A stretch of 64,000 nt of DNA from Hyaloraphidium curvatum SAG 235-1 (GCA_025558095.1 JAIVFI010000030.1:1-64000); one strand, 5' to 3'. Shown: positions 9,973 to 62,798, numbered from the stretch's first letter. Notes: a model not told the origin generated them from the sequence alone. A program made the numbers and translations.

Positions 9973-10161
9973 ATGCAGCGCTTCCGCCCCCTCCTCGACG
10001 GCAGCCCGCCGCCCTCCTTCGGCGGCGCCCTCCGCCTCCGCATCACGCTGCTGCTCTCCGCCGCCGCCCTCCTGGGCGTGGGCGTATGGCACGCCGTCGT
10101 GGGGCTGCTGGCGTCGCGGGAACAAGGGGGCTGGGCGGTGCGGGGCAACGCGAGCGGGTGA
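9973..10161 (+). CDS. Small single-TM protein (62 aa), hypothetical
   Basis: Follows a C-rich 5'UTR-like tract typical of genes here; TM segment ITLLLSAAALLGVGVWHAVVGLL. Confidence 0.4.
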   Translation: MQRFRPLLDGSPPPSFGGALRLRITLLLSAAALLGVGVWHAVVGLLASREQGGWAVRGNASG

Positions 10162-10333
10162 GGGGAGCGGACGAGGGGGGCCCGCAGCGCTCGGGGGCCC
10201 GACCCGGACGGACTGCCGCCTCGGGGACACCGGCCGTCTCGATTGCGGAGCCTCTAATCGGCCCGCGGGTATCCCACAACACGACGCAGATCGGTATCCC
10301 GGTATCCCCCCCCCCCCCCCCTTCCCGCGGCGC

Positions 10334-11845: not shown

Positions 11846-12323
11846 GGCGCGCTCGTTGGGGTTGCCGGGGACGGTTGAGTTGATTGGTGTCACCAGCCCG
11901 GGTTGCCTTGGGGGGGCGGAGCGCGGACGGTGACTCGGACACACCGAAGATGGGACCTTGGAAAGGCCGACTGCGCTCGGAAATGGAAGTAAACACGGCA
12001 TGGTTAGCGCACATGCGCAATCGGGCCCGGGATTCGCCGCTGCCGGACTGCCACCGCCCGGCAATCGGTGTCACCGAGGGATGCCGGTTCCGGTCCCCAG
12101 CGCGTCAGCTGGGTCACGGGACGATCGAGCGAACGACTGGTGTGGCACGCGTGCCACGGGCGATAGGATTGGGTGGGATGGGGCATCGGAGTGCGCGGCC
12201 GATCGACGTGTATAGTGTCTTCTTATTTCGATCGACCGCCGAAGCTTCGAAGTTGCGCCGCCGACGTCGGTCCTCCAAAGAATCCCCGGCCGGGTCCCTG
12301 CAGGACAACTGCCGGCTTCCGCG

Positions 12324-42773: not shown

Positions 42774-44817
42774 ATGAGCGCCCCCAAACTCCTGCGTCGC
42801 AGCACCACAGCCTCCTCGTCGTGCTGCTCACCGCTCCCGCTGCAGGCGCATGAGCACGACCACGGTGCCGCTCACGGCGGACACGCGTCGGAGGAGGTCC
42901 TGGACGGCCCGCCGGACGCCATCCCGGAGGGCACCGTCCGCGTTTTTGTTGCGAAGAAGATCGTCACCGTCGCGCCCGGGCCCGGGGTCGCCGAGGCGGT
43001 GGCGGTCGGCTCGAACGGGCGGATCCTGGCGGTCGGGTCGCGCGAGGACGTGCTGGCGTTCGCCGAGGCCAAAGCCGCCAAGGGAGCCGTGGAGGTGGAC
43101 GAGACGTTCAAGGACAAGGTGCTGCTGCCGGGATTCGTCGAGGGTGGGTCCCCCGGCGGAGCCGTCGTCAACCGATGGGCACTCACTGGTTCTCTCCCGC
43201 TCCCACCCTCCTTCTCCTCCAACATTTAGCCCACGGGCATTGCAACGAGGCCATCAACGCTACCCTCGTCAACGTCGGCTACTTCCCATCCCCCAAGGTC
43301 AACGGCGACATGTCCGAGCCCGTCAAGAGCTACGACGACATGGTCCGCGTTCTGCGGGCCGAGGACGCGGCGATGAAGGCCCGCGGGGCACCCGACGACG
43401 AGGTCATGATCGCCGTCAACTTCGACCCGATCTACTTTGTCGGGCAGCTGCGGCTCTCGAAGGAGCACCTTGACCGCGTGTCGACGACGAGGCCGATCGC
43501 CGTCCGCCACGCGTCGGGGCACGTGCTCACCGCCAACTCGCTCCTGCTCAAGCTGTCCGGGATCACCCGCGACAGCGACACCGAGGGCATCGACAAGCTC
43601 CCCGACGGCGAGCCCTCGGGGGAGCTACAGGAGGGCGCCCAACTGCTGGTCAAGGTCGCCATCACCAAGGTGCTCCAGCTGAGCGTCGGCACCGCCGCGC
43701 TGGAGAACCAGGCCCGCCTTGCGCGCAACGCCGGCGTGACCACGACGACGGAGCTGGGTGGCCTGCTCCTTTTTAAGCCCGAGATGGCCAAAGCGTGGGC
43801 CGAGACCGCCGCCAAGCCGGCGTTTCCGGCGCGGTTCGCCGTGTACAACATTGCGTTCTTCCCCGGGCTCGGGGACGGCGCGCCGGACTACGCGGGCAAG
43901 GCCGAGACCCTCAAAGGGCTGCAGGCCCTTTGCCACGACAAGCTCCGGATGCCGGGCGCCAAGCTCCTCATTGACGGCTCGATCCAGGGGTTCACCGCCG
44001 TGCTGCGGCCGCCGGGGTACTTCAAGCCGCCGTCGGGGGATCCGGATCACCAGGGGATCAGCAACTACGAGTCCCTCGAAGACTTTGTCGCGGCGCTGGA
44101 GCCCTTCCACGAAGCCGGTTTCAACGTGCACGTGCACTGCAACGGGGACGGCGCGGTGGACGTGCTCCTGGATGCCGTGGAGATCGTCAACACCAAACAT
44201 CCGCGGAGCGACCACCGGCACGTGTGCACCCACAGCCAGGTATCCAACGGCCACCGCACGACGCGTTCCTCCCCTCTCTGACCCCGCCTCCCTCTACTTT
44301 CCAGCTCACGCGGCAGGACCAGTACCTCCGCATGGCCTCGCTCGGCGTCTCGGCCAACATCTTCGCCAACCACATCTACTACTGGGGCGACCAGCACCGC
44401 GACATCACCGTCGGCCCCGAGCGCGCCGCGCGCATGAACGCCTGCCGCACCGCCCTCGCCAGCGGCGTGCGGTGTCCCAGCATCCACTCCGACTCGGGCG
44501 TCACGCCCATCGGCCACCTGCACACGATGTGGTGCGCGGTGAACCGCCTCACGGCGTCGGGCGAGGTGCTCGGGGAGGGCGAGCGGATCACAGCCGAGGA
44601 GGCGCTGAGGATGGCGACGGTCAACGCGGCGTGGCAATTGAAGATGGACAGGGACGTGGGCAGCATCGAGTGCGGGAAGATGGGGGACTTTGCGGTCTTG
44701 GAGGAGTCGCCGCTGGACGTGGACCCGGCCAAAATCAAGGACATCAAGGTCTGGGGGACGGTGGTGGGCGGGCTGAAGCACCCGTCGTCGCTGACGCTGC
44801 GGGCCGGGACGATCTGA
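42774..44817 (+). CDS. Amidohydrolase family 3 (YtcJ/NfdA-like)
   Basis: AVAV..GRILAVG, LLPGFVE|AHGH, HASGH...NS, KLLIDGSIQG, HCNGD, HSDS, GSIECGKMGDFAVL; at least two introns. Confidence 0.92.
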
Positions 44818-44945: not shown

Positions 44946-46457
44946 ATGCCCCTCCCGGTGTTCCACCTCGGCGAGGGCGAGTGGCTCGCGGTCCTCCCCG
45001 CGGCGCCGGAGTGGACGCCCGACCTGCCCTCCTCCGCCCCGCCGCCCGACCCCGCGGCAGCCGTCCGCGGCGCGCATCCCCTCGCGCTGGACGCGTTTCT
45101 GGCTGCGCTGCGGCCCGGCGCGGGCGCGCTGGCCTTCTCGGTGCGGCTGCAGATCGCCCTCGAGCCGCTGTCGAAGAGGCCGCTCGCGCGGGCCGCGGTG
45201 CCGTGGCTGGGCTGCGTCGGCATGGCCGCCGCGTTCGGCGTGTATGCCGGCGGATACTACGGGACGGCACAGCTCGCGACCGGGATGGCGACGTTCCTCG
45301 CGTTCGCCACCTGCTCGACCGTTCTGGTCTCGGCATTTAGCGCGTACCGGGTCACCTTCAACACCGTGAGCTCCGGCAACGATTCGAAAGCAGCCGCAGA
45401 ACCGAAGCCTGCCCGCGATTTTTCGTCCTACGGTGCCGCGGGGCTCGCCCGGTGGATGCAGCTGGTTTCCGGGGCGCTGCCTGGAGGGGCCGGGGGCCTG
45501 CTGCTGCTTCACGACCCGAAGGATCCCCTCTGCCCTTGCGGCGTCACGTCGTGCGCCGGGAGGATCCCGCTCCTGGCCGGGGTGACCCGGATCGCCGAAT
45601 CGGCATTCAAGTTCTGCATCTTCTCCGCCTACATCTTCGTGCTGTTCGCCAGCATAGCCCTCTTCCCCCCCATGGCGCCGGAAATGTGGGCCGTCCCCTG
45701 GGCCGTCTTCCTCTTTGTCATCTTCCTCGCCGGCGCGCTCGGCTTCCTGATCCCCGTCGTGTTCTCCCGCCTGACCACGAACCTCCCGCTCCTCCAGCTC
45801 GCGCGCAGGATCAACCGTCGCGCAATGAGGCTCGCCCTCGACCCCGTGGTCGAGAGCTACCGTTCCGCCGCCGCGGCTTCCGGCCCGTGGACGGGCCCCG
45901 ACAAGCCGCAGCGCGCGGCGTACATGGACCTGCACCGCATCTTCGCCAGCTCCTGGGGCAGCCGGATAAGGACGTACAACGTCTCGTCGCCGATCCTGAT
46001 CCCCATCGCCGCGGCCATTGTGGCCGGCTGCGCCAACATGGCCGCCGGATCGTGCCTCCCCGCCGTGTACCCCGTCTACCTCGCGTACCAGCTCTGCGCG
46101 CTTTTCCTGTTCGACCTCATCAACGTCGCCGCGGCCAACGCCCAGATCAGCGACATCCGCTCGCTGTACCTCGACGCGGCGCAGGAACTGGCCGACGTCC
46201 GGCGGGAGCTCCTCTCGTGCCCCTCGCGGCCCCCGGACCCGGCGCTCGCCGCCGCCATCGAGAGCGACGTGCAGGTGCTGGCGGGCTACATGGACATGGA
46301 CAGGTACCGCGCCAGGTTCCTGGGGTTCGTGGTCACGTTCGGCGCGCTGCGGACGCTGCTGGCGACCGCCCTGACCCTGGTGGTGGGGCTGTGGAGCGTG
46401 CTCAGGGGGCTGGGGGTGGAGCTCACGGGGCAGCTCGCGTGCCCTCCGAGGCTGTGA
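44946..46457 (+). CDS. Seven-TM membrane protein, gustatory-receptor-like (7TMIC-like), copy A
   Basis: Seven hydrophobic segments, long loop after TM4, HDPKDPLCPCGVTSC loop, C-terminal RARFLGFVVTFGALRTLLATALTLVVGLWSVL. Confidence 0.7.
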   Translation: MPLPVFHLGEGEWLAVLPAAPEWTPDLPSSAPPPDPAAAVRGAHPLALDAFLAALRPGAGALAFSVRLQIALEPLSKRPLARAAVPWLGCVGMAAAFGVYAGGYYGTAQLATGMATFLAFATCSTVLVSAFSAYRVTFNTVSSGNDSKAAAEPKPARDFSSYGAAGLARWMQLVSGALPGGAGGLLLLHDPKDPLCPCGVTSCAGRIPLLAGVTRIAESAFKFCIFSAYIFVLFASIALFPPMAPEMWAVPWAVFLFVIFLAGALGFLIPVVFSRLTTNLPLLQLARRINRRAMRLALDPVVESYRSAAAASGPWTGPDKPQRAAYMDLHRIFASSWGSRIRTYNVSSPILIPIAAAIVAGCANMAAGSCLPAVYPVYLAYQLCALFLFDLINVAAANAQISDIRSLYLDAAQELADVRRELLSCPSRPPDPALAAAIESDVQVLAGYMDMDRYRARFLGFVVTFGALRTLLATALTLVVGLWSVLRGLGVELTGQLACPPRL

Positions 46458-46592
46458 GCTCGTCGAGGGTTTGGACGCCGAGTGCCACCCCATGAGACGG
46501 GAGATGTCGCATGCTGATGAAGGCATTGTTGAACCCACTAGCAACTTTTTTCTGCTTAAACTCCTAAACTTTCACCGCTGCAACTTCTCCGC

Positions 46593-48118
46593 TCAAGCCG
46601 TTGCAGGACAGAAGCTCTCCAGGGTCGCCGTCACCCCGAAAGCCCGCAGCACGCTCCCAAGTGCCACGGTGACCGTCAGGCCCGTCACCAGCATCGTCCT
46701 CACCGTCCCGAACGACACCACGAACCCGAACAGCCTCGCCCTGTACCTGGCGACGTCCTGGAACGACGCTATGGCCCGATCGTGCAGCGCGATCTCGTCC
46801 GCCAGGGGTCCCGGCCCGGTGCGGAGGGCGAGCGCGCGGAGCTCCCGCTGCGCGTCGCGGTAGACGGCCGCGACGGCGTCGATGAGCGAGTGGCGCGCGG
46901 CGAGGTTGACGGCGTTGACGGTAAAGTACACTGCGGCGTGAGCGAAGAAGGCGAGCTGCCATGCGGAGATGCAGCGGCCGACCGCCTGCGGAAGGTGCCC
47001 GGGGAGCCGTCAGGGTGCGCGTCCGGCTGTACCGGGACGGCGCAATGCTCACCGCATAGAGCGCGGTAAGCAGGGCTAAGCCTGGAATCAGAGCGAGCCC
47101 GAACAGCCGCGATAACACGAGCGAGTCCTGGTGCCGCCGGAACCGGCACAGGGCCGCAAAGTGGTAGTGCAACCTGACATAGAGCCACGAACGTGAGCGG
47201 GGAGGGACGTCGCCGGCCGCAGCTGCGCGGCGGAACCGTCCTAGGAGGTCTCCCATGGCGTTGTCGACGGCGCGGCAGTGCAGCCGCCGCTCCAGGGCCA
47301 GGTGAGCCATGTTGTCCACCGCAAGGAGCCGGGAAATAGACAACAAGAGTTGCGCCGGGAAAAAGAAGGTCCATATTGCGCCGAGGAGGATGCCGTACCA
47401 AGTCGACCAAATACCTGCGCCGAAGGTTACCACCGGAGTATACGCGAGAAGGAAGAAGGTTGCCCAGGGAATGGAAACGTTGCCGAGAATATCAAGGAAG
47501 TCAAGCATACCAGAAGCGCTCTCGACCCAACTGCAGCACGAGACACACGGGCATGAAAGGTCACCGGGCACATGGCGTACGAGGGACGAGGCGGCAATGC
47601 CGGCCTCTGGCGACTTGACCCGGCCAACGAGGCGTAGCCATCTGCAGAGCGCTCCCACGTGCGAATACTCCGCCCCACCGTTGAGGAGGAAGTTCTTGCC
47701 CAGGCCCTTGGTAGCCAACCCGTTCATGACCGCGTTCCCGGCGAGGAACAAGGCCACGCCGGCGATTCCGAACGCAGCATCCTTGGCGGCGAACGTGTCT
47801 CCCGAAAACAGCAGGGTAACCCCGAGCAGAGCCACGGTAGCTGCGCTCGAAGGAGTGAGAAGAACCAGCCCGGCACCGCCCCGGGACACGCAGCCCGAGC
47901 CACGCCGCAGCCTTGGCCACCCCGCCGAGGTCGCGCAGCATTCCGTCTGCGGTCAGCGGGTCGGCCGCACGCGCCGCGTCGTTGGGGTTCGCGCCCTGCT
48001 CCTCGTCGCAGAACGTCGGCACCGGGGGAGACGGGGCGGGGAACAGGGCCAGCCACTCCTCGGGGAGGAAGTCCGCGTCCTTCTGAGGGAGAACGTCGTC
48101 GGTGTCCGAGGCGGCCAT
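46593..48118 (-). pseudogene. Frameshifted 7TM-family copy B (inverted paralogue of 60655-62191)
   Basis: Same N-terminus, intron position and C-terminus as copy C. Small deletions near 47890-47850 split the N-terminus across three frames. Confidence 0.75.
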
Positions 48119-48945
48119 CGTTAGCGGCGTTGCGGGGGGAATGTGTCTGGGGTGCTTCTGTGGAAGGGCTGGGACCAGTACGTTGTCTCCCGCGGCCGAC
48201 GAGTAACTACCTGCATCGCCGGCGTCCGAAGCTATTTCGCATGGTCGCGAGCATTGGAGCGATTGCGTCCTTCAATGATCCGGGCGCCGTTTCCCGTAGA
48301 CTCCTCGCACCGGCCCTAACGGCCTCGAAACGGCATGGCCTGCGCAGGCTTTCTCTCTACTCGTGACCGCCGGTGCTCTTCGTCATCGCCCAAGCGGCCG
48401 ATCCGAAGCCTACAGCTGTGACGTGCTTCTTCTCTGCGGTCGCCGCTGCAAGCCTTCGGCAATGCAGTTTTCGCGACGCGGCGGAGCCGCTATTGTTGCG
48501 GGTCCCCGATCTGCGGAGCTGTCTACTGCGGCACTAGAGGTCACTTGCCCGAGATGCTTTTGCACCGTCTGCCAACGTGCAACCTTTAATGTGAGGTAGG
48601 GTTGGCGCTTGAGTGGTGAGGACTCACAGGATCAATGGCCGGACCCGCAGGGTCCGAGGCGGCGGCACGGCTTCTGGAACCAACAAGGTCCGCCGGCCCG
48701 GGCGCGAACGGTGATGCATTGGATTGTTTCGGACCACGGAATCCGTGAGTGTGCTTACTTGGTTCAATGTCCGATGTGTCACGTCTCTCGGCCTGACGAT
48801 GGAATCGGCGCGGCGAATGCGAACGGACGGACACCCCAGCCACGCCAGAGCGGCGGCAGGGGAGGTCTTTGCGGCAAAATCAACCGCAGCAACGGCTCGC
48901 AACTCCGCCGCGTGAGCTTCTTCGAGTCGCTTCGCGCTTGCCGTT

Positions 48946-49161
48946 ATGAGGCCGCCGGCCTTCGCGCTCCTTGCCGCGCTGCTCTTCCTAGCGTTCCTCT
49001 GGGCGCCGCGCGCGTCCGGCCTCGCCGTTCCCTCCCAAGCCGGCGAAAATGAGGAGCATGCGTTGGCTGCGCGAGTGGCCTCCCCCGGGGGCCAGGCTTC
49101 CGGTCCGTTGCGGTCAGGCGAGATCTGGTCGGTCCTACGCGAATCCGCTAGGGCGCGCTAG
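48946..49161 (+). CDS. Small secreted peptide precursor candidate (71 aa)
   Basis: Signal-like MRPPAFALLAALLFLAFLWAPRASG, acidic pro-like segment ending ALAAR. Its stop overlaps the opposite gene's stop in CTAG at 49158-49161. Confidence 0.35.
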   Translation: MRPPAFALLAALLFLAFLWAPRASGLAVPSQAGENEEHALAARVASPGGQASGPLRSGEIWSVLRESARAR

Positions 49162-50498
49162 CACATGGCAGCCAACGCAGCCGCGGCGGCAAGTGCGGGC
49201 ACCAACCCGGCCATCGCCCTGTTCCCGCCGGCGATCCGGCTGCTCGTGACGGTGCTGGTTGCGCCGGTGGTGGATGCGATGCTGCTGGACGCGATGGTGC
49301 TGGAAACCACAGTGCTGGACGCGAGGGTGCTGGTCGCGGTGGAGCTGGCGTCGGTGCTCGGGGCTATCGTGCTCGGGGCCGCAGTTTCCGTGGTGCTCGG
49401 AGCGGCGGTGCTGGGAGCGGCGCTGCTGGTCGCAAGAGTGCTGGGGACCGCGGTGCTGGAGACAACGGTGCTGGATTCCACCGCGCTGGATTCGACCGTG
49501 CTGCTGGCCACCGTGCCTGTGGAGGCCACGGTTGAAACCGGGGTGCCGGTCCCCGCGGCACTGGATGCGATCGTGCCCGTCGCGACGGTGCTGACGGTGG
49601 CGGTGGTCGAGCCGGAGATGGCGGCAAAGGGGATGGCAGGGGAGCCGTCGACGACGGAGGCGCACCTGGCCGTCATGGCGACTGCGGCGGGGAAGTTATC
49701 GGCGTGCAGTAAGGGGGGAGAGAGAGGGGGCCATACAGGTGATGGGGCCGAGCGAGACGGTGCCGCAGTTGCCGGCGGTGACGTCGAAGGTGCCGACGCC
49801 GGTGAAGGGGATCTGGGGTGGCAGGAAAACGCGTCATGGGAGGCGGCCAGCAGGCGACGGGGAGAAACCCACGGTGCAGGCGTCGTTACCGAAGAAGGCC
49901 ATGGTGCCCGAAGCGGCGCCAGGGGCGCAGGCAGGGCGGCCGAAGGCGGGGATGCCGATGAAGCCGAGGGGCACGCACTGGTTGGCGATCACGGCGGCGG
50001 CGGTGAGGTAGGTGCCGGAGCAGGTGGCGCCGGACCACTGGGTGACGACGAAGTAGTCGCCCTGCGGATCGGAGCGGAGCGTCAGTGCTGGGCCGCGCGC
50101 GGAAATGGCGCGCGGCAACCCACCGAGCCCTGGAGGGTGAAGGACTGGGGTGCATTGGCGTTGCAGGTCTGGGTCACGTCGTAGGGCACGTTGGCGCTGC
50201 TGGACATGCATGCGACGCTCCCCTGGCAGGTGGTCGGCAAGTTTGCCTGGACTGCTTGGGGGGGAAGGGGGTGAACGGGGGACACTGATCAGTGAGGGGG
50301 GAAGGCGCCGCGGCAGCACGCACAGAGCTGCGGCGCCGTGGCGTTGGCCGTGCAGCCGCTGTCGGGCAGGAAGCCGTCGATGATGGTGGCGCCCCGGGCG
50401 GGAACGGCGGCCGCGGCGAGCAGGGCGGCGATGATCCCGAGCGCTCTGACGCGCAGCGGGAGTCCTGACTGCGAGCAGCTATTCTGCCGCCGAGTCAT
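49158..50498 (-). CDS. GPI-anchor-type cell-surface protein: receptor-kinase ectodomain plus Ser/Thr stalk, no kinase
   Basis: Signal peptide; four introns at the same positions as in the receptor kinases; Cys-rich ectodomain; 5-residue S/T repeats; C-terminal AGGNRAMAGLVPALAAAAALAAMC*. Confidence 0.85.
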
Positions 50499-50986
50499 GT
50501 CGGGATGGGCATCGGAGACGTGAACCGAGAAGTTCCCGAGCGGTCCGAGGACGCGTCGCCGGTCCATCGGCCGTGCTCGGTCGCAATGCAGTACTGACAC
50601 TCAGACGACCCGACGGCGTCGTCGCGGCCGCGAGATCCCCTCTCCACCGGAATTCCGCTCTCCGCCCACGCGCCGCACAGTGCCGGCTCCTGCGGGTTCG
50701 GTCGAGGCAGCGACGGAACTTGGCCGCTGGCTCCCTGGACGGGGCGAATTGCGACGCGGCGGGCGCCCGTCCCCGCGCCTTCGGCGGAAGAAACACTGAT
50801 GATGCGTTGCCGCAGGAGGCCCGCTGCGCAGGTCTTGAGGACTCGGCGTCGGGAAGGAGGGTGGGGACGCGCGGGCTGGTGATCTGACTCGACAGGATCC
50901 CCGCTCCCCGCTCCTCGAATCACAGCGCAGACAGACTTGTAAACACGATTGCTTAACAAAAATCGGGCGAGCTTCTACCGTCGTCC

Positions 50987-53384
50987 CTATCCGACGATCT
51001 CGTCCAGCTCCTTGGCCACCTGCACGAACGTCGGCCTCTTCTTCGGGTCCTGGTCCCAGCACCGCTCCATAAGGCTCCACACTGCGTCCGGAACCCCCTC
51101 GGGCCGCTCCGGGCGGACGCCCTTGACGGCAACGTTGTACAGGACCTGGATGGGAGGTGGTTGTCAGCGTTTGTCGCGATGGCGGCGCTCGCACCCACCA
51201 ATGCCGGGTTCAGCAGCTCCTCGAGCGGGTACTTGCCCTTGCTCACGACCTCGTAGCACAACATCGAGAACGCGTACACGTCCGCCGGCTTCTGCAGCGC
51301 CGCGCCGTCCACCAGCTCCGGCGCCAGGAACCCCGGCGTGCCCGAGAGCCCGCCGCCGACGGTGCCCGCGGCGGTCGACTTGCCGACCTCCTGGCGCACC
51401 CGCGAGAGGCCAAAGTCGGTGATCATGGCTTTGCTGCCGTCAATGAGCACGTTGAGGGACTTGATGTCGCCGTGCAGGATGCCGAGGCCGTGCAGGTAGA
51501 CCATGCCGTTGGCGACGTCTTCGAGGAAGCGCAGGCCGAGGTCTAGGGGCCAGCCGCGGGCCGACAGGTACTTGCGGAGGTTGCCGTCGCGGACGAGGTC
51601 GGTGACCATCATCGGGGGAGAAGGGCAGTAGGCCATCAGCGGGAGGACTGCGTAAAAGCGTGGAGATCAGCACCTCCACAGACTCCGAGCCGTTGGCGAG
51701 CCGCTCACCGTTACGCTGGACGAGGCCCTCCCAGTTGGTCACCTCCTTCGCAAAAGCCTTCAGGGTGTGCTCGTCGAGGTCTCCTTTCAGAGTCTTGACT
51801 GCGACTCTAGTCCCGCGCAGAGTGCCGACATAGACAACCCCAAAGCTGCCTTCTCCCAGCTTTTGCGAGCTGTCGATGACGATGTCCGTAGCCGAAACAA
51901 GGAGCTTGGAGCTCGGCTGCGGGACAGGGGGGGGGGCGATCGGGCTTCCGCCCGGAAAAAGGGGAGTGCCGGAGGCGACCGACCCAGCGGCGAGCGTGGA
52001 TCCTGCTGTGTCCGCAGAAGCTCCGTCCCCAGAGGCTGCCAGAGGAAACGCAAGAGCAACGGCGGCAGCGGGTGTCACGGGTAAAGCTTGCTCCTGGTGT
52101 GGGTCGTTGCTCGGCACTGAGGCGACGTCCTCCGCGAGCGCAGGGTTGCTGGCTTCGGAAGGTGAAGCCGCCACTCGCGGCACGCTGTCAGCGTTGCCCC
52201 TGGCGGTGGATGAAAACCCGCGAACTGTCCCAGGTTCCATATGCGGCGAGCCTGCAGGCATCTGCTTCTCTGCTTTCTCCGCAGGAATGCTCTCCGCAGG
52301 CCTCCTCCTCCGCCTCATCCAGAACAGCAGCACTACAAGCAGAGCAAGCGCCGCGAGTCCCCCAAGTACACCGCCTACGATTGCTCCGACGGGCGGCGAT
52401 GAGGAGGTCGGCGGAGAAGGGAGAGGCGTTGATTGCGTTGGCGTCGTGGTGGTGACGGATTGGGTACTTGTCGTGGCAACCGATCCCCCTGTAGCCTCTG
52501 CAAATGGAATCGGGAAACCCTGAAGCGGGTAATCGCACTTGGCCGTTAGAGCGACTGTGGCGAAACTGGTCACCAGAACTTCACGAAGAACGGAGCCGGA
52601 GGGCATACACGTAGCAGAACCGAGATTCAGAATGTCGCAGTGGCCGCGAATGGCTTTGAACGTGCCAAAGCTGGGGAAGGGCCTCTGCATGGATGCCGTG
52701 CGCATGAATAGGGTAACGCAGAGCGCGCATGAGCGGTAGGGGAAAACGTACCGAACAGGCCCCGTCAACAAAGAAGGACAAGCTCCCTTCCGCGTCGGTG
52801 ACGCCGGAGCATGTGGAGAGGCCATAGGCCGGGATGCCGAGGAAACCAAGCGGGACGCACTCATTGGTGAGCACCGCGGCGGCGGTAGAATATGTGCCGG
52901 AGCAGGAAGTGCCGGACCATTGGGTGAGGACGAAGTAATTGCCCTGCGCGGAAAATGCAAGAATCAATGGAGAGAGTGGGCGCGGCAGAAGGCGAGTGAA
53001 GAACCACCGTGCCCGAGAGCGTGAATGACTGAGGGGCGCTTGCGTCGCAAATCTGCCGAGCGTCGTAGCCAACGCTGGAAGTAGATTCACAGGCTAAATT
53101 TGCCTGACATGTCCCGGGTAGCTGGGCTTGGATTGATGGCGGTTTCGATGCCGGCCGAGTAGTGGCCGGTGTGAGCACGCACGAAAGAAATCAATGCTGC
53201 GCGGCAGCTCACAGAGCTGCTTGAAAGTGCCTGCAACAACGCATCGGCTCCCAAGAGTGAAGCCGTCGATGATTGTCGCGCCCCGTGCAGGAACCGCCCT
53301 CGTGATGATGGCGGCGATGATCGCGACCACGATGACGCGAGGCGCCGCTAGCGGCCCTGAATTATTGCTCCGATGCGCAGTCAT
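50987..53384 (-). CDS. Single-pass receptor-like TKL kinase, copy L (7 exons)
   Basis: Signal, Cys ectodomain, Thr stalk, TM VGAIVGGVLGGLAALALLVVLLFWMRRRRR, GEGSFG, VAVK, HGDIKSLN, DFG, GTPGFLAPE, CWDQDPKKRP. Confidence 0.88.
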
Positions 53385-54086
53385 GCTCGAGATCAACGTC
53401 GTAGCCACGCGTGTGCGGTGGCGGCACTTCGTCCCCCCGCGTCGGACTGCGCCCCGGCACAGCCGATCCGATGGCAAAGTCCGCGGGCGCGAACTCCGCT
53501 TGCGGCAAAGTGGTGGCCGGAACCCGCTCGGTGGCGCCGTGCGCTTGAAGCTCGGGGCGAGGGAGCAACGGAACGTTGCCACGGGTTTGGGGTCGCGTGC
53601 GACGCCGCGGCAGGCCGCTTGAGGACCGCGTCCCGAACTCCGACGAGGTAAACCCAACTGCAGCGCCAGCCCAGGCAACGGGCCTAACGTCCGGGAACTG
53701 AAGGCCTGTTTGAAGGCCCACGGCAGCGACTATGACCGCACGCGAAGCGGTGGTGTTCCTTGGAGCGGAGCGAGGGACCTCAACGAAGTCGAGCGCACGT
53801 CCTCGGGGCACGTGGGCGGCGCGGGGAGGGTTTCCGCGTCGGCACTCGTCCCGTCCAGGTCGAAAACCCAGCGTAGTTTTCGAGCAGGGGAGAGAGCGGC
53901 TGGTGGCGGCTGGAGGTCCGACGGTTCCAAGGACGCACTCGTCCGAGAGAGCCTGTACGTCTACATCCCTCACGCCCGCTTGGAGGCAGCTCGAATGGAG
54001 CAGCAAAGGAATCAAGAGCCGCCTTTTCGCGATTGTACAGGCCTGCAATTAGCATCTCGGCGTCAAACAGCTTCATGCTCCTGTGG

Positions 54087-55406
54087 TCATCTTCGATCAA
54101 CGGCCTCTGCCCGCCCGCCAATCATCTCCACTTCCGCCTCCCCATCCAAGTCCCCCAGCGGCTCGTCCAAAACCCCCTCCTGCACCCCTTCCCCGCCCCC
54201 GTCCTCCTTGGGCGCCTCCCCGCACCCCTCCCAATCCACCGTCCACCTCGCCGCGATCCCCATCTCGGCCTTCCACCCCTCCCCCGTCCTCAGGCAGTCG
54301 TTGAGCCCCGCGTGCTCGCACCCCTTCGATCCCGAATAGACGCAGTCCGAGCGCGCGCGGAGCAAGGGGGCCGAGTACAGCGCGGCCCCGCCGAACGCGC
54401 CCCGCACGGGTACGAACGGTTCCTTCCCCTCGCCGTCCCCCTGCTCCTTCACATTCTTCATCCCCTCGGGCCCGACATACTCGCAATACCACCCCCCTTT
54501 CTTCGCCCCCGCGCAGCTGCGGTGGTCCAGCGCTCCCCCGGGAAACGCGCCCCCGCCGTCGAGCGCGAACCGGTCGCAGTAGTATCCTTGCGCCCCCTCC
54601 GCGTGCGGCGCGGCGGGGACGGATGCGACGGTGCCGTTGGGGAGAGAACGGGGGAGGTACCACCCACAGATGCCGTTGGGGAAGAGGGCGGACCAGCCCT
54701 TGCCCCCGAAGGGCGGCCGGAGGTGCGAGGTGGAGGGGTCGAGGCGGTCGTACCGCCGCTCCGCGGCCAGGAGGTTGGTCCACACACCCTCCCATCCCTC
54801 CACGCCCCGCTGCCGCTCCACGCGCCACGGCACGCACATGTCCGTGTCCACCGGGAACAGGTAGTCGACGTTCGAGTACCAGGAGTGGGTCCGCAGCGCG
54901 TGGAGGTACCCGTCCCGCGCGCGGGCGAGCGTGCGGAGGTCCTTCTTCCCGCCCGGGTGGCGGAACGCGACGGCGCGGGCAGAGAGGATCTTCGGGTGTC
55001 GCGAGGGGCGGAGCGGCGGGGCCGGCGGGGCCGGCGGGTACGGAGGCGTCCAGTCTTTATGGTCGTCCTCGGATTCCAGGAACGGCACGCCGCGTTCGTC
55101 CGCCCAGGCGCGCAGCGCGCGGCCGCCGTCCCGCGAGCCGTTCTCGACGAGGAGGACGTGCAGCGCGCCAACCATCGACGCGAGGCGCTCCAAATTTGCG
55201 AGGAGGAAGGGGAGCTCGTGCGCCGCGGAGCGGGCGATGGTGGCGGCGAGGAGGACGAGGTCCGACGGGCAGCGCGCGCGGGACGCGTTGGAGGCTGTCC
55301 GTGGCGCGGGCTCCGGCTCGTCATCGAGGGCGGCCGGCGGCGACCGGAGCAGGAAAAACGACGAAATGAGCAGGACGAGCAGAACGAGTAGGTTCGGATG
55401 GGGCAT
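54087..55406 (-). CDS. CAP59/CMT1-like (GT69) mannosyltransferase-family glycosyltransferase
   Basis: N-terminal TM; VENGSRD, LARARDGYL, VDTD (DxD), DRFAL, VRGAFGGAALY, CEH; intronless. Confidence 0.8.
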   Translation of the reverse strand: MPHPNLLVLLVLLISSFFLLRSPPAALDDEPEPAPRTASNASRARCPSDLVLLAATIARSAAHELPFLLANLERLASMVGALHVLLVENGSRDGGRALRAWADERGVPFLESEDDHKDWTPPYPPAPPAPPLRPSRHPKILSARAVAFRHPGGKKDLRTLARARDGYLHALRTHSWYSNVDYLFPVDTDMCVPWRVERQRGVEGWEGVWTNLLAAERRYDRLDPSTSHLRPPFGGKGWSALFPNGICGWYLPRSLPNGTVASVPAAPHAEGAQGYYCDRFALDGGGAFPGGALDHRSCAGAKKGGWYCEYVGPEGMKNVKEQGDGEGKEPFVPVRGAFGGAALYSAPLLRARSDCVYSGSKGCEHAGLNDCLRTGEGWKAEMGIAARWTVDWEGCGEAPKEDGGGEGVQEGVLDEPLGDLDGEAEVEMIGGRAEAVDRR

Positions 55407-55824
55407 TCGAGGCCATGGGCGACACCGTTGACGGCTCTGACGGATCCGTCGATCCCCCTCCCTCGATCTCCGAGCAATTCAAGAAACCAACGACGTGAGC
55501 CACGAAATGCACAGATATACATGTGATCTATCGAGTTCGGCCTACTGGAAGTGTGGATGCTCGCGATTCGGACAGGAATCGTCCCGACCGTCCGCCGCGC
55601 CCATTCGCCGCCTGGAAGCCAACTGAGCCTGATCCGCCAATGCATGACACCGCGGAGGACACGGAAGAGCCTCTCACCAGTAAATTGCGCCCGTCTTTGC
55701 CAGTTTCGGTCGCTTGCCTCCGTTTGGGGGCCTACCAACGGTCACATGACGTGGCCCATGCAGGGCATCTGGTTCCGCACGGCCGGCGGTCCCTTATCTG
55801 ACGGCGTCATCCCGGCCCACCGGA

Positions 55825-57366
55825 ATGGCGCTCGTGTGCAGCTGCGCGACGACGCAGCTCGTGCTCCGCGGCACGGGCTCGCTGTCGCTGGTCGGCGGGG
55901 CCGGGCGGCCGCCTGGGGAGCGCGCCGCGGAGATGCCGGTGGCGACAACCGCGCCCGCGGGAGTCCAGGGTCCCGGACGCCCCGGGTTGCCCGGAGAACT
56001 CGTATCGCGCATTTTGAGCAAAGTGGACCCGCTGGACTCGGCGACGCTGGCGGCCGCCGCGGCGGTGTGCCGCGCGTGGCGGCCGTGGGCGACCGAGCGG
56101 CTGTACGCGTACTGCCGGCCGCCGCTCTCAAAGCTCGACTCGCTGGCCGCATTCTGGGAATCTCAGTACCCTTCGGGCGACGACGCGCCCTCGGCCAGCC
56201 TGCTGCTCGACGCCCCGCGGCTGCAGCACGCCGTGCGACTGGACGGGCTGTTCCCGCTGCCCCCCGCGCCCTCGTCGCTTCCCGACCACCCGCTGAAAAC
56301 CCTCGACCTCTCGCTGCTCTCGCACGCTTCGGCAGCCGCCTTGCACCGCTTGGCCCTGCACTCCCCGCCGGCCTCGGCCCTGGTCACCGCGAAAGACTAC
56401 CGCCACATGGCCGGCGGCTCCCTGGCCGCCCTGCTCACCCGCTCGCCGCGTCTGCTCCGCCTCGTCCTACCGGAAAGCTACGGCGAGGACCGCCTCTCCA
56501 TCGACGACTTTTTCCTCTCCCTGCTCCCCACCACCGTCCCCCTCCTCGCCCATCTGGCCGTGTACGACAACGGCCACGTGACGGACCGCGGCCTCCCGCC
56601 CTTCTCGCAGCTCCCCCTGCGCTCGCTCCACCTCGCAGTCGTGCCGTGGCGCGTGATTCTCGCAAAATTGCTGTCGCACCTGCCGCCCACCCTGGAATCG
56701 CTGGGCATGGGCAAGCTCAAGGCGCGCGACGCGGACCAGCTCGTCTGGTTCCTCCGCGACCACCCTTCCATGAACGAACTGGACCTCCCCCACGCCGAGC
56801 CCGGGTTCTTCGCGGGCGGCACCGTCGCCCGCCTCCTCGACGCCGCCCCGGCGCTGGAGAGGCTGGGGATCGAGGTCGAGCCCGGGCAGACCATCCCGCC
56901 CCCGCCGCCTGCGGAACCGGAACCACAACCTGCGGAAGGCGAGCAGCCCGATGCCGATCCCGGCGGCGCCGAACAGCTGCAGCCGCCCCCCGTCGCCGCA
57001 CCGGCGCCGCAGGAGCCGGAACCGCACTACCTCTCGGGCCTGCTGTCCCCTCCCCCGTCCTTGACCCACCTCCGCGTGGCGGGGCACGCGCTGCCTCCCG
57101 ATCTGCTCCCCCGCGTGCTGCCGCAGCTCGTCGCGCTGGACGCCAGGGGGTGCGGGGCGGAGGTGGCCGCGGCGTTCGCGGCGGGGGCAAGGTACCCGAA
57201 GCTGAGGATGGTGGACGTGCGAGGATGCGAGGGCGTGGAGAGGGAGGTGGTGGTGGCCGCGTGCCCGGCGCTGGAGAGGGTGTTCGTTGGGGAGATCAGG
57301 CAGGGGGACGGGCTGCGGGAGTGGGGCGCTTTCGGGAGCGAGGGGGGGAGGTGGAACCTCTCTTGA
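55825..57366 (+). CDS. F-box / RNI-like leucine-rich-repeat protein
   Basis: LPGELVSRIL...AVCRAW F-box followed by LxxLxL repeats. Start may be the ATG at 55932. Confidence 0.8.
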   Translation: MALVCSCATTQLVLRGTGSLSLVGGAGRPPGERAAEMPVATTAPAGVQGPGRPGLPGELVSRILSKVDPLDSATLAAAAAVCRAWRPWATERLYAYCRPPLSKLDSLAAFWESQYPSGDDAPSASLLLDAPRLQHAVRLDGLFPLPPAPSSLPDHPLKTLDLSLLSHASAAALHRLALHSPPASALVTAKDYRHMAGGSLAALLTRSPRLLRLVLPESYGEDRLSIDDFFLSLLPTTVPLLAHLAVYDNGHVTDRGLPPFSQLPLRSLHLAVVPWRVILAKLLSHLPPTLESLGMGKLKARDADQLVWFLRDHPSMNELDLPHAEPGFFAGGTVARLLDAAPALERLGIEVEPGQTIPPPPPAEPEPQPAEGEQPDADPGGAEQLQPPPVAAPAPQEPEPHYLSGLLSPPPSLTHLRVAGHALPPDLLPRVLPQLVALDARGCGAEVAAAFAAGARYPKLRMVDVRGCEGVEREVVVAACPALERVFVGEIRQGDGLREWGAFGSEGGRWNLS

Positions 57367-58060
57367 TCGGATCCTCGGGGAGGCGGATGGGGACGGTGCC
57401 GATGGGAACGGGAAGGAAGGGAACAGTGTCTTGCCGGATGGGAAGGGCGCTTGCTAGATGTACAGGTAGACGGCGGCGAAGAAAGGCCGATAGACAGATG
57501 CAGTAGTGGAACCTATGGGTTGGGAACGACCCGCTCTCCATCTTCTTCCTAACTGGAGCAAGAGCAGCCGTGCCCCGTTGTCCTTGCGACTCGTGGCGCG
57601 TGCTCTCCAGTTTTCTTCGCGTGCGGACGTCGGCAGTCGGCATGCACCTGCTTCGATTGCTTCGAGTATCGAGTATCAGCCTCACCAGCCCACCTCTACT
57701 TCGACCCACGTCTCCACGTCTCGCTACCGGATACCTGTTCACCGACCGGGCCGCCCGCTTTCGTCGACCAATCTTCTGCTTACGGGGCAGGCAGTGTTGG
57801 CTGCCACCGCAACGCACGGCGCACCCGCAGCGAGGAAACCGGCACTGCGCGCGGGTTCTTTCATTGCCTCGCTCCGCGCTCGAAGGAGCAGCACCCGCGG
57901 TGCCGTCCGCACCGTGCGGCGCTTAGACGGAGAGTGAAGCCCTCGGGCGCTCCCACATCGGGCCGGGTGGTGCCGCATCCCGGCGGGCGCGAGGTCCACC
58001 GCGCCCTCGCTTCGTTGTCGGTCTTTTCGCGGCCCCCCTCGACTGCGCCGCACAGCCAGG

Positions 58061-60498
58061 ATGCCTCCGCGACGACTTCGCTTACAGCCGCGACGAATGA
58101 CGCGCGTCTGCGCTGTCGGGATCGTCGCCGCGTTGATCGCCACGCGCGCGGTTCCGATCTGGGGCGCGACCATCGTCGACGGCTTCATCCCCGGCTCGGG
58201 CTGCAGGGTCAACGCCACCGCGCCGCAGCTCTGTGCGTCGACGCCCGGCCCCCACCCGCTCCTCACTGATCATGTCCCCCCTTTCCCTCTCCTGCCGAGC
58301 AGTCCAGGCGAACCTGCCGACCACCTGCCAGGGCAACGTCGCCTGCATTCCCAGTAACGCCACAGTCAACTACGACGTGACCCAGACCTGCAACGCCAAC
58401 GCCCCCCCGTCCTTCACCCTCCAGGGCTCGGTCGGTTTCCGCGCCCCATTTCCGCGCCCGGCACACTCTGACGCCCCCCTCCCCCTCCCATCCGCAGGGA
58501 GACTACTTTGTCGTCACCCAGTGGTCCGGCGCCACCTGCACCGGCACCTACCTCACCGCCGCCGCCGTGATCGCCAACCAGTGCGTGCCCCTCGGCTTCA
58601 TCGGGATCCCCGCCTTCGGCCGCCCTGCCTGCGCCCCTGGCGCCGCTTCGGGCACCATGGCCTTCTTCGGTAACGACGCCTGCACCGTGGGTTTGGCCTC
58701 GTGGCCCAGCGCCCGCCCTCCCATGACGCGTTTGTCCTGCCGCCCCAGATCCCCTTCACTGGCCTCGGCACCTTCAGCGTCACCGCCGGCAACTGCGGCA
58801 CCCTCTCGCTCGGCCCCTCCACCTGTAAGTCCCCCACTTCCCCGCCCTTTACCCCGCGCTGACAACTTCCCACCCACAGTCGCCCTGACCGCCAAGTGCG
58901 CCTCGATCGTCAATGGCTCCCCGGTCATTCCTTTTGCTGCTATTGCGGCGGTTACAACTACGACAACAACCACGACAACGCAAACGTTCACCACCGCGAC
59001 ACCAACAGAGGCGACACCGGTTCCTCCAACGCCAGCATCCTCATCTCCACCTGTTGGGGCGATCGTCGGTGGCGTGATCGGAGGAATCGCGGCGGTCGCG
59101 GCCATCGCCGGGCTGTTGTTCTGGCTGCGGCGAAGAGGTAGGCCTGCGGAAAGTGTTCCTGCGGATCCAGCAGAGAAGCAGCAGCCTAGAGGCTCGCCGA
59201 ACCTGGAAACCGCTGCGACAGCTCAGCACTACAAGGGAGCGGGCCCACCACCAGCGCCAAATGGCTTCGTTGCTTCTGCTCCAGTTCCCGCAACCATTGC
59301 CGTTGACAGTGTCCCGCGAGTGGTGGCTTCAGCTCCCGAACCTAGCAAAACCGCACTCCTCGTGGACCTCGCCTTGGTGCCAAACAATGACGCGGAACAA
59401 GCTTTGCCCGTGCAGCACGCTGCGGCCGTTGCTCTTGCTTCTCCTCCGTTGGGTATAGGGGGTGGAGCTGAGGACACGGGATCGACCTTCGCCGCGGCCT
59501 CACTTGCCTCCGGTGCTCCCCTTCCCCCCGGCGGCGGAACCCCGATCGCCCCCCTCCCTGTCCCGCAGCCGAGCTCCAAGCTCCTTGTTTCGGCTACGGA
59601 CATCGTCATCGACAGCTCGCAAAAGCTGGGAGAGGGCAGCTTTGGGGTTGTCTATGTCGGCACTCTGCGCGGGACTAGAGTCGCAGTCAAGACTCTGAAA
59701 GGAGACCTCGACGAGCACACTCTGAAGGCTTTTGCGAAGGAGGTGACCAACTGGGAGGGCCTCGTCCAGCGTAACGGTGAGCGGCTCGCCAACGGCTCGG
59801 AGTCTGTGGAGGTGCTGATCTCCACGCTTTTACGCAGTCCTCCCGCTGATGGCCTACTGCCCTTCTCCCCCGATGATGGTCACCGACCTCGTCCGCGACG
59901 GCAACCTCCGCAAGTACCTGTCGGCCCGCGGCTGGCCCCTAGACCTCGGCCTGCGCTTCCTCGAAGACGTCGCCAACGGCATGGTCTACCTGCACGGCCT
60001 CGGCATCCTGCACGGCGACATCAAGTCCCTCAACGTGCTCATTGACGGCAGCAAAGCCATGATCACCGACTTTGGCCTCTCGCGGGTGCGCCAGGAGGTC
60101 GGCAAGTCGACCGCCGCGGGTACCGTCGGCGGCGGGCTCTCTGGCACGCCGGGGTTCCTGGCGCCGGAGCTGGTGGACGGCGCGGCGCTGCAGAAGCCGG
60201 CGGACGTGTACGCGTTCGCGATGCTGTGCTACGAGGTCGTGAGCAAGGGCAAGTACCCGCTCGAGGAGCTGCTGAACCCGGCATTGGTGGGTGCGAGCGC
60301 CGCCATCGCGAGCTTCGCTGACAATCACCTCCCACCCAGGTCCTGTACAACGTCGCCGTCAAGGGCGTCCGCCCGGAGCGGCCCGAGGGGGTCCCGGACG
60401 CGGTGTGGAGCCTGATGGAGCGGTGCTGGGACCAGGACCCGAAGAAGAGGCCGACGTTCGTGCAGGTGGCCAAGGAGCTGGACGAAATCGTCAGATAG
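58061..60498 (+). CDS. Single-pass receptor-like TKL kinase, copy R (7 exons)
   Basis: Introns 58233-58302, 58431-58497, 58687-58748, 58825-58879, 59777-59837 and 60287-60339 give an open signal-ectodomain-stalk-TM-kinase frame ending LDEIVR*. Confidence 0.92.
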
Positions 60499-60654
60499 GC
60501 CCTACGGTAGATGTCCCCACTACTTTTGCAATTCAATCGTGTTTGCAGATCTGGCGGCGCTGTGATTCGAGGAGCGGGCTGGCCACGGCGCGACTTCCTC
60601 TCCCCCGCGAATCTCCCGCAGATTGTCTCCCGAGCAGACAGCCTCCCAACGACG

Positions 60655-62191
60655 ATGGCCGCCTCGGGCGCCGACGACGTTATCCTTCAGAAGGACGCGG
60701 ACTTCCTGCCCGAAGAGTGGCTGGCCCTATTCCCCGCCCCGTCTCCCCCGGTCCCGACGTTCGGCGACGAGGAGCAGGGCGCGAACCCCGAGGACGCCGC
60801 CCGCGCAGCTGACCCTCTGACGGCGGACGGAATATTGCGCGACCTGGGCGGCGCGGCAAAGGTGGCGGCGTGGCCCGTCCTGCGCGTCCACGCGGCGCTG
60901 CCGGGCTGGTTCACGGCACTCGCGATTTCCCCTTCCAGTGCCGCCACCATCGCCCTCCTCGGGCTCACCGTGCCCTTGGCAGGGGACATGTTTACCGCCA
61001 AGGACGTGGCGCTCGGAATTGCGGGGACGACGCTGTTTCTCACAGGGCTCTCTGTCAGTTACGGCCTCGTCAGCCCGTTCCTCGGCGCCAACATTTTTCG
61101 GAACGGCTTGGTGGAGTTCTCGCACGTGGCAGCTCTTTGCCGATGGCTGCGGCTCGTTGGCCGAGGGAAAACGCCTCAGGGCGTCGAGGCCGCCTCCTCG
61201 CCCCTCGTGCGCCACGTCCCCGGCGACCTCTCTTGCCCGTGTACGTCGTGCTGCAGTTGGGTCGAAAGCACATCTGGAATCCTCGACTTCCTCGATCTTT
61301 TCGGCAACGTTTCCCTTGGTTGGATGGTCTTGTTCTTTTTCGCCTACACACCGGTTGTAACCTTCGGTGCGGCCCTGTGGTCGACTTGGTACGGCGCTCT
61401 CCTTGGGGCCATATGGGCATCCATGTTTCCGGCTTACATCTTCACTGCGTTGTCACGCCTCCTGGGGAACGACAATATGGCTCACACGGCCCTCCAACGG
61501 CGGCTGCACTGCCGAGCTGTCGATATGGCCATGGCTGACCTCCTGAGCCGGTTTCGCAGCGCCGCTGCTGCCGGCGATGCGCCTCCCCGCGCGGATTCGT
61601 GGCTCTACGTCAGGCTGCACTATCGCTTCGCGGCGCTCTGCCGGTTCAGACGCCAGCAGGACGGGATCGTGATCTCGCGGCTGTACGGGCTCGCTCTCGT
61701 GCCGGGTGCGGTCCTGCTTACCGCGCTGTATGCGGTGAGTGTCGCAGCGTCACGGTGCCGCCGGACACGCAACCTGACGGCTCCCCGGGCACCTTCCGCA
61801 GGCCGTCGGCCGCTGTATCTCCGCCTGGCAGCTTGCCGTGTTCGCCCACGCCGCGGTGTACTTTACCGTCAACGCCGTCAACCTCGCCTCCCGCAACTCG
61901 CTCATCGACGCCGTCGCGGCCGTCTACCGCGACGCGCAGAGGGAGCTCCGTGCGCTCGCGCTCCGCACCGGGCCGGGACCCCTTGCGGACGAGATCGCGC
62001 TCCACGACCGCGCGATAGCGTCGTTTCAGGACGTCGCCAGGTACAGGGCGAAGCTGTTCGGGTTCGTGGTGTCGTTCGGGACGGTGAGGACGATGCTGGT
62101 GACGGGGCTGACGGTCGCCGTCGCGCTGTGGAGCGTGCTGCGGGCTTTCGGGGTGACGGCGACCCTTGAGAGCTTCTGTCCCGTATCATAG
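60655..62191 (+). CDS. Seven-TM membrane protein, gustatory-receptor-like (7TMIC-like), copy C
   Basis: Intron 61735-61801; HVPGDLSCPCTSCC loop; C-terminal RAKLFGFVVSFGTVRTMLVTGLTVAVALWSVL. Confidence 0.75.
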
Positions 62192-62404
62192 AGGCCAGCG
62201 GATGCAGGAAGATCGGTTACTCCCGGAAGTGCTCGGGTTCCGAAGGTGGCGACGTCGTTCCAGTTGTGGCGGCCAAGGAAGTAAGGAACTGGATGGGCTC
62301 ATGGGATATTTGGACTAGAAAGCTGGAGTATCTAGTAATTTCCAGGCTTTCTTCCGCCTCTTCCCACTTCTCTCGAAATCGCCGCTGGGCGGCCTCGGCA
62401 CCGC

Positions 62405-62798
62405 TCAACTGTCCTCCGCGCACAGGCCCGAGACGCAGACGTCCGAGCCGCAGCAGTCCCCATCCCGGCTGCAGCCCTCGCCCGTGTCGGCACATGCCGG
62501 GGCGTACCGCTTGTACAGCGCCCGCCGGTCCCTTGCGGGCGCGACGCAGGCAACCATGCCCGCGGGGGCGCCGGGGTGCGCGTACTCGCAGAACTGGTGG
62601 GCGGCGCAATCAGCGCACGAACGGCGGAAGACGGCCGCGGTGGTGGATGGGGGACTGCGCGGAACAGGGGAGTCGTGAGCATCGGGCGGCGAAGGGAAGT
62701 CGGCGAACCCACGCCGCGGCGGCCGAGGCGACTGAGGCAACGATTAGGAGGGCGACGATTAGGAGGGCGACGATTTTGACGGCGGTCGTGAACTTCAT
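62405..62798 (-). CDS. Secreted precursor ending in an inhibitor-cystine-knot-like peptide (2 exons)
   Basis: Intron 62712-62655 gives signal-APPSTTAAVFRR-SCADCAAHQFCEY...CVAPARDRRALYKR-YAPACADTGEGCSRDGDCCGSDVCVSGLCAEDS*. Confidence 0.88.
62740..62775. repeat. 15-bp tandem repeat within the signal peptide (IVALL x2)
   Basis: cgattaggagggcga occurs twice, followed by cgatt. Confidence 0.85.

Follow-up and report, generated by a model that had tools for sequence, protein, structure and literature searches.

A probable home locus of receptor-like kinases and kinase-less ectodomain twins in the fungus Hyaloraphidium curvatum

Gene content of the locus

We analysed the first 64,000 nt of a contig (C30:1-64000; hereafter, the window) from the monoblepharid fungus Hyaloraphidium curvatum SAG 235-1 (GCA_025558095.1, JAIVFI010000030.1). 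Between positions 44,946 and 62,798 the window holds two receptor-kinase genes, L and R, a kinase-less gene with the same ectodomain, E1, and, around and between them, genes for seven-transmembrane (7TM) proteins, a probable glycosyltransferase, an F-box-like protein and a small Cys-rich secreted protein (Table 1). A first-pass annotation had read this region as a single recognition locus. The analysis below indicates that it is probably the home locus of a small private family of receptor kinases and their kinase-less twins, the latter likely to be glycosylphosphatidylinositol (GPI)-anchored, and that most of the other neighbours are probably incidental.

The host assembly comprises 31.9 Mb in 55 contigs, with a GC content of ~68%; a telomere repeat was looked for at the start of contig C30 and none was seen. 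The gene map was based on six-frame reading, Pfam, database models and RNA-derived contigs, the last obtained from one public run and covering the right arm of the region. GT..AG introns of kinase R were spliced out in the RNA contigs (marked in Table 1), as were those of 7TM-R and of the Cys-rich gene, the latter on the minus strand with a CT..AC joint. This establishes that kinase R, 7TM-R and the Cys-rich gene are transcribed, and it verifies their exon structures. Numbers of loci from genome searches refer to the best-scoring candidates and are lower bounds.

Table 1. Genes and features of the locus, with positions on contig C30
Feature	Position	Strand	Description and basis
7TM-A	44949-46457	+	Intact, distant member of the putative 7TMIC-fold family; one open frame
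7TM-L	46596-48118	-	Left-arm copy of 7TM-R; intron ~46986-47052; frameshifted
E1, ectodomain-only gene	49158-50498	-	Signal peptide, ectodomain, long Ser/Thr stalk, hydrophobic C-terminal tail
Receptor kinase L	50987-53384	-	Translation; PF07714, 4.5e-24
Probable CAP59/CMT1-like type II membrane glycosyltransferase (GT-A)	54087-55406	-	Language-model neighbours
F-box-like open reading frame	55825-57366	+	PF12937 at cut-off
Receptor kinase R	58097-60498	+	Translation; PF07714; RNA joints
Introns of kinase R	58233-58302 (RNA), 58430-58496 (RNA), 58687-58748, 58825-58879 (RNA), 59776-59836 (RNA)		Plus one preceding the last exon
7TM-R (database model P0001, 537 aa)	60511-62191	+	Intron 61734-61800; RNA joint
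Small Cys-rich secreted gene	62405-62798	-	Intron 62655-62712 (58 nt); spliced RNA contig
Cys/Thr-rich secreted gene	65393-66232	+	Outside the window
E2, second ectodomain-only gene	~67.5-68.6 kb	-	Outside the window; tail similar to that of E1
Fourth 7TM gene	69277-70559		Outside the window

Receptor kinases and their kinase-less twins

Kinases L and R are built alike: a signal peptide is followed by a Cys-containing ectodomain of ~190 aa, encoded in five short exons, then by a Thr/Ser/Pro stalk, a single transmembrane (TM) helix and a long juxtamembrane segment, and finally by the PF07714 kinase domain. The order of signal peptide, ectodomain and TM helix was read directly from the translations, while the exon structure was backed by RNA joints. 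The two ectodomains are ~58-60% identical at the amino acid level in the core exons. As translated, both kinase domains hold VAVK, HGD, DFG and APE, the HGD being of the non-RD type. With these catalytic motifs intact, and with the kinase preceded by a signal peptide, an ectodomain and a single TM helix, L and R have the features of single-pass tyrosine-kinase-like (TKL) receptor-like kinases. Non-RD kinases are often tied to innate immune receptors. One paper reportedly has this link as its theme (PMC8463890). The closest sequence match to the kinase among solved structures was CERK1 (3.8e-15), followed by RIPK3, LIMK and Eph kinases (1e-14 to 1e-13); Pto was also among the nearest. The kinase is thus best described as generically TKL, and these scores do not separate CERK1 from RIPK3, LIMK or the Eph kinases.

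E1 carries the same ectodomain; a stretch of ~150 residues rich in Ser/Thr comes next, and the C-terminal tail is hydrophobic. Its database model, P0006, is truncated at the N-terminus, and tblastn placed its exons at 50207-50124, 50064-49870 and 49691-49161. On inspection of the translations, the tails of E1 and E2 are of GPI type, and the kinase-less twins are probably GPI-anchored. Both receptors and twins bear N-x-S/T sites and long Ser/Thr-rich stalks. The first-pass annotation had called two receptor kinases and an ectodomain-only paralogue, and both calls were confirmed.

In the whole genome, the core exon of the ectodomain has just five copies. Four are at this locus, and the fifth (C25:126925) is joined to a kinase at C25:125406, hereafter the C25 kinase. 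Pfam returned no match for the ectodomain, LysM, leucine-rich repeat (LRR) and lectin families included, and a language-model feature search with it gave a top score of 0.81, which is chance level. A word-based protein search with the 492-aa exon, limited to proteins of 0.55-1.75 times the query length, matched P0006 alone. A literature search on chytrid receptor kinases gave nothing specific. As judged from these searches, the receptor-kinase/ectodomain family is private to Hyaloraphidium curvatum and essentially confined to this locus.

Duplication and exchange between the two arms

A repeat search identified the region as a diverged inverted duplication, with segments that are 96%, 83% and 71-94% identical. 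Between the arms, parts of the kinases are 96% identical over 1,046 nt and the 7TM genes 83-87%. The ectodomain of R is 77-94% identical to that of E1 and, over 761 nt, 93% identical to that of E2, while R and L are just ~71% identical in the stalk/TM stretch immediately 3′ of the ectodomain core (52235-52474 versus 58969-59208).

Codon-level comparison sharpened this pattern. Between L and R, synonymous divergence (dS) was 0.03 in the kinase domain, 1.39 in the stalk/TM stretch and 0.52 in the juxtamembrane segment, and the intron of the kinase region showed no mismatch in 61 positions. Between R and E2, exon 2 had a dS of 0, exon 3 of 0.04 and exon 5 of ~0.9; over the ectodomain comparisons, exon 3 spanned 0.04-0.06. 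Such strongly patchy dS is characteristic of repeated gene conversion or unequal exchange among the four paralogues. On these comparisons, kinase R is a mosaic: its ectodomain exons are of E type, equal or nearly equal to those of E1 and E2, and its kinase domain, almost the same as that of L, is of L type.

The ratio of non-synonymous to synonymous divergence (dN/dS) across the ectodomain was 0.54 for R-E1 and 0.49 for R-E2, falling to 0.11-0.17 in the core exon and rising to ~1.1 in the signal-peptide exon. In the 25-codon exon 4 it was 2.5 for R-E1, a value that reflects six non-synonymous changes against one synonymous and is not significant, and 0.78 for R-E2. The codon ratios, which reach 1 in no other exon, point to relaxed selection on the ectodomain, with no overall positive selection demonstrated.

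A second contig of 30.6 kb, C48, was considered as another haplotype or locus and rejected. Its positions 1-6077 are the reverse complement of 6086-12190, and its remainder copies C30:50530-74000 at 99.95%, the differences being one mismatch and ~10 single-base indels of the consensus-error type. C48 is a fold-back long-read artefact, and this redundancy produces duplicate matches in every whole-genome search. The arms on C30 are too diverged to be an artefact of the same kind.

The 7TM genes

The first-pass annotation had placed a 7TM gene downstream of the kinase in both arms. Both genes are present, and there is a third, 7TM-A; the left copy, 7TM-L, is frameshifted. 7TM-R is 99% identical to database protein P0001. 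Relative to it, 7TM-L has deletions of 1 nt and 10 nt about 70 codons past the shared ATG (47865-47935), so that the frame shifts near 47.87-47.90 kb and the exons map in two different frames. The database model of this copy, P0002, begins downstream of the frameshift and reads through the 3′ intron. The frameshift has one of two causes: 7TM-L is a young pseudogene, or the assembly is in error there. 7TM-A matched profile positions 11-499 in a single open frame (E 3e-142) and showed ~29% identity to 7TM-R by tblastn.

The family to which these genes belong is large. Relatives of P0001 fall into 308 clusters at 50% identity, and eight of ten sampled were Hyaloraphidium curvatum proteins. A genome profile search gave 892 first-look candidates, the best 85 of which were scored, all with E <1e-93. 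Family size was estimated at ~320, with a wide error, from 12 genes met in unrelated windows, five of which were in our lists of ~134 loci. Members are dispersed, as at C43:321232 and C16:607885.

These proteins had also been annotated as 7TM channels. Pfam matched no family in 66 members, 7tm_6 and 7tm_7 included, and the TM7 motif was looked for in P0001 and not seen. The AlphaFold2 (AF2) model of P0001 had a predicted local distance difference test score (pLDDT) of 87, and VIA-align of this model retrieved 18 insect OR/GR entries with Z 10.1-15.5 over 316-347 aligned residues, the next, unrelated row having Z 8.2. In Foldseek the top rows were likewise all GR/OR, with E values of just ~0.1. 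The predicted model thus supports a 7TMIC (insect OR/GR) fold for the 7TM genes, at the level of fold only. A single GRL has been described in each of two Spizellomyces species (Benton et al. 2020, PMC7746228), and a later structural screen of 7TMIC proteins makes no mention of Hyaloraphidium curvatum.

The first 48 residues of P0001 (60511-60654) were modelled with pLDDT <50 and are absent in its closest paralogue, P0003. The start of 7TM-R may instead be the Met at 60655, ~160 nt past the kinase R stop codon.

Central genes and the Cys-rich secreted gene

Two genes lie between the arms. The minus-strand open reading frame had been annotated as a glycosyltransferase, and although it had no Pfam match at E up to 1, its nearest neighbours in a language-model atlas were clusters of CAP59/CMT1 mannosyltransferases (PF11735; score 0.96, 206 of 256 features). 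An N-terminal anchor and a D-x-D motif are present in the reading frame, and the gene probably encodes a CAP59-like glycosyltransferase. It has exactly one paralogue in the genome, at C25:147692-149005. The second gene, annotated as F-box/LRR, gave an F-box-like match of 24.3 bits to PF12937, exactly the cut-off, at residues 55-86, and 20.4 bits to PF00646 against a cut-off of 20.5. The LRR part of that call did not hold: a Pfam search reaching to E 1 found no LRR family. In the genome the F-box gene is a singleton, with no paralogue besides the copy on artefact contig C48. For neither central gene did a sequence search of the PDB find a solved relative.

The small Cys-rich secreted gene of the first-pass annotation is real, and it is spliced and transcribed. 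Exon 1 encodes the signal peptide, and exon 2 a four-Cys leader module, a KR site and a six-Cys tail. The last 33 residues, after the KR, read C-x6-C-x5-CC-x4-C-x4-C, and so have the six-Cys spacing with a CC doublet of a knottin. The matches to Toxin_23 (18.5 bits, cut-off 22.2) and Dickkopf_N (22 bits, cut-off 25) were both sub-threshold. The leader module, within 62408-62653 (-) in the window, is ~50 aa long, with four Cys, and closes on a conserved Tyr-dibasic-Tyr motif. It follows signal peptides at more than 100 genomic loci (e.g. L011:4159-4317, L020:3858-4022 and L025:5564-5668), where the cargo varies between PAN/apple-like, beta-rich and other Cys-rich domains or short tails; in most paralogues the cargo domains are large and unrelated. 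A conserved dibasic site ahead of variable cargo fits a putative processed precursor.

On either side of the cluster, two further genes were noted. At its left edge, 43175-44817 (+) encodes an amidohydrolase (PF07969), a housekeeping-type neighbour split by one intron or frame change. Beyond the window, the Cys/Thr-rich secreted protein has a Thr/Lys/Arg-rich linker, a match to Carb_bind (PF10645) that is sub-threshold and, at the C-terminus, a Cys-rich domain, and its gene has one partial paralogue, at C18:624426.

Linkage of the neighbours to the kinase family

The sole paralogue of the glycosyltransferase lies 21 kb from the sole out-paralogue of the kinases (C25:125406-127113). The probability of this by chance is ~0.0014, or ~0.01 when six tested families are allowed for. 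No C25 paralogue was found for the amidohydrolase or for the Cys/Thr-rich secreted gene. In a tblastx comparison of the C25 and C30 loci, credible similarity is confined to the kinase and ectodomain exon, and all else is GC-rich noise. From the position of the glycosyltransferase paralogue near the C25 kinase, kinase and glycosyltransferase seem to share an old duplication, and the glycosyltransferase seems to be the one neighbour with non-random linkage to the kinase family. Further kinase matches on the same contig, at C25:128835 and C25:155190-157921, hint at a possible old paralogous segment.

It could be argued from this linkage that kinase and glycosyltransferase form a functional pair kept since the old segmental duplication, in which the enzyme, acting in the Golgi, would glycosylate the ectodomain or Ser/Thr stalk of the receptor or make a glycan that the receptor senses. 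The absence of C25 paralogues for the amidohydrolase and Cys/Thr-rich neighbours sets the glycosyltransferase apart, and receptors and twins do have Ser/Thr stalks and N-x-S/T sites. Against this, 21 kb is not adjacency in so compact a genome, the recurrence is single and was noticed post hoc, a common history is not a common function, and the enzyme family was assigned from language-model similarity, Pfam being blank. We consider such a pairing unlikely.

Linkage between kinases and 7TM genes was tested with ~134 7TM loci and ~115 kinase loci, a pair being defined by a gap of ≤3 kb. Six pairs (five independent events) were found where ~3.9 were expected (P ~0.2). They comprise both arms of this locus, counted as one event, and sites at C43:411 kb, C30:453 kb, C40:333 kb and C37:207-210 kb. 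The kinases of the C43 and C30:453 kb pairs are without the ectodomain of this locus. Among the matches listed, the nearest paralogues of 7TM-R and of the kinase had no kinase or 7TM neighbour, respectively, and the 12 7TM genes met in 20 other windows had no kinase inside those windows. The ±5 kb around the C25 kinase contained neither a 7TM gene nor a twin, and leader-family genes were likewise absent there.

These results bear directly on the proposal of the first-pass annotation, namely that the kinases, GPI twin, 7TM channels, F-box protein and Cys-knot peptide form one module for recognition of self and non-self or of microbes. All the components do lie inside 18 kb, three are transcribed, the kinases are non-RD, and the ectodomain family is private and evolves fast (dN/dS ~0.5). 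The proposed check, recurrence of the gene set at other loci, failed: kinase-7TM adjacency is at the level of chance, and the C25 kinase has none of the other components within ±5 kb. The annotation had also named large, interspersed families as evidence against a module, and two of the families are very large, with 7TM genes in hundreds of copies and the Cys family at more than 100 loci. With a 7TMIC-fold family and a Cys-rich family of these sizes, adjacency to either says little in this genome. In addition, 7TM-L is frameshifted, the F-box gene is a singleton without recurrent link, and selection gives no overall positive signal, the core exon being conserved and the paralogues converted instead of held apart. 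Taken whole, the recognition module is very unlikely. The part of it that survives is the set of kinases and GPI-type twins, which is private and is a credible sensing unit; the 7TM, F-box and Cys-peptide genes as partners do not survive. As parts of one machine with the kinases, the 7TM, Cys-rich and F-box genes are not supported.

Interpretation of the locus

We therefore favour, as the probable reading, a home locus of a small private receptor-kinase/GPI-twin family with incidental other neighbours. An inverted segmental duplication would have given rise to the two arms and to their common order of a kinase and then a 7TM gene, and repeated gene conversion or unequal exchange would then have homogenised patches between the paralogues. 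Three causes would explain why the 7TM, Cys-rich and F-box genes adjoin the kinases: they travelled with the duplication, their families have very many members, and the genome is compact. As to function, an extracellular ligand would most likely be bound by the kinases, which would signal through phosphorylation, with the GPI twins serving as co-receptors or decoys, in the manner of CERK1/CEBiP-LYM, receptor-like kinase/receptor-like protein (RLK/RLP) and RET/GFRalpha pairs.

Several observations weigh against the home-locus reading. The locus holds four 7TM genes within ~26 kb, which is denser than the genome average. AF2 modelling of residues 1-140 of P0006 with paralogue exon rows gave pLDDT 33 and no usable ectodomain fold. 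The linkage statistics rest on partial lists. Finally, the leader family was over-represented ~3-fold in the vicinity of 7TM genes, so that some functional neighbourhood may exist: of 20 windows (±5 kb) around the best leader-family matches, eight (L009, L011, L015, L017, L020, L022, L023 and L025) included at least one 7TM gene, against 11-14% expected. Expectations were computed analytically. The enrichment has P 0.0007-0.004 for a family of 320-420 7TM genes and P 0.16 if the family numbers 890, and the lists alone gave 7 loci against 2.1-2.9 expected. The pairs are of mixed orientation, with three in tandem, three divergent and two convergent.

From this enrichment it might be proposed that the meaningful pair is that of 7TMIC-fold channels and secreted leader-family proteins, the latter acting as ligands or modulators and the kinases being bystanders. 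The dependence of the P value on family size and the inconsistent orientations speak against such pairing. Both families may simply occupy common fast-evolving compartments, and known 7TMICs bind small molecules. The excess is suggestive of co-localisation of two expanding families, not pairing, and we give the ligand-channel proposal little credence.

A broader scheme would join the pieces differently, with the kinases, GPI-anchored twins and knottin-tailed protein of this early-diverging fungus forming a ligand/receptor/co-receptor system that arose apart from those of plants and animals and is tuned by the glycosyltransferase, and the leader proteins acting on adjoining 7TMIC channels throughout the genome. 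We regard it as highly improbable. Finally, contig C48 shows that this assembly does contain artefacts, but to explain the two arms in the same way, as a fold-back or as a haplotig that collapsed, is scarcely credible, given that the arms on C30 differ by 4-29% and in gene content (E1 on the left only, with different ectodomain types) and that RNA contigs match the right arm exactly.

Comparison with known systems

Pairs of a receptor kinase and a kinase-less ectodomain twin are central in plant immunity, and receptor/twin pairs likewise in animal growth-factor signalling; to our knowledge they have hardly been described in fungi. If the home-locus reading is true, this private monoblepharid family, with its recent duplications and its conversion, would be evidence that a receptor with a co-receptor (or decoy) has evolved more than once, and would provide a compact system for the study of how new ectodomains get recruited.

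The neighbouring families resemble known systems in part. With the insect OR/GR superfamily (7TMIC; fungal GRLs, PMC7746228) the 7TM genes share a predicted whole-chain fold with Z up to 15.5, a length of ~500 aa, seven helices and a 3′ intron. They differ in that 66 members lack a Pfam 7tm_6 or 7tm_7 match and the TM7 motif is not evident, and, compared with the Spizellomyces GRLs (PMC7746228), in that Hyaloraphidium curvatum has hundreds of copies where each chytrid has one gene. The Cys-rich gene resembles knottins and conotoxin-like precursors in its six-Cys spacing after a dibasic site and in its conserved signal and leader with variable C-terminal cargo. Unlike in those precursors, the leader holds four conserved Cys, most paralogues have large unrelated cargo, and Pfam matches are sub-threshold.

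The Brassica S locus (SRK, SLG, SCR/SP11) likewise links a receptor kinase, a kinase-less ectodomain copy and a small secreted Cys-rich gene. That locus is defined by co-adapted, highly polymorphic receptor/ligand haplotypes with suppressed recombination. The present locus, of which one haplotype was analysed, lacks an S-domain, and conversion keeps its paralogues alike. Its Cys-rich gene, one of more than 100 in a dispersed family, is no dedicated partner, and the C25 kinase has no gene of that family within ±5 kb.

A further parallel is with CERK1 and its CEBiP/LYM partners and with plant RLK/RLP clusters. The ectodomain differs from those of CERK1/RLK systems in that Pfam recognises no domain in it, be it LysM, LRR, lectin or another, and in that the searches made found no relative outside the species; the kinase is no nearer to CERK1 than to RIPK3, LIMK or Eph kinases, so that match scores do not place it within RLK/Pelle. 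What is held in common is the arrangement: a single-pass TKL-type kinase linked to kinase-less copies of its ectodomain that carry a GPI-type tail and, as in plant RLK/RLP clusters, a history of local duplication and gene conversion.

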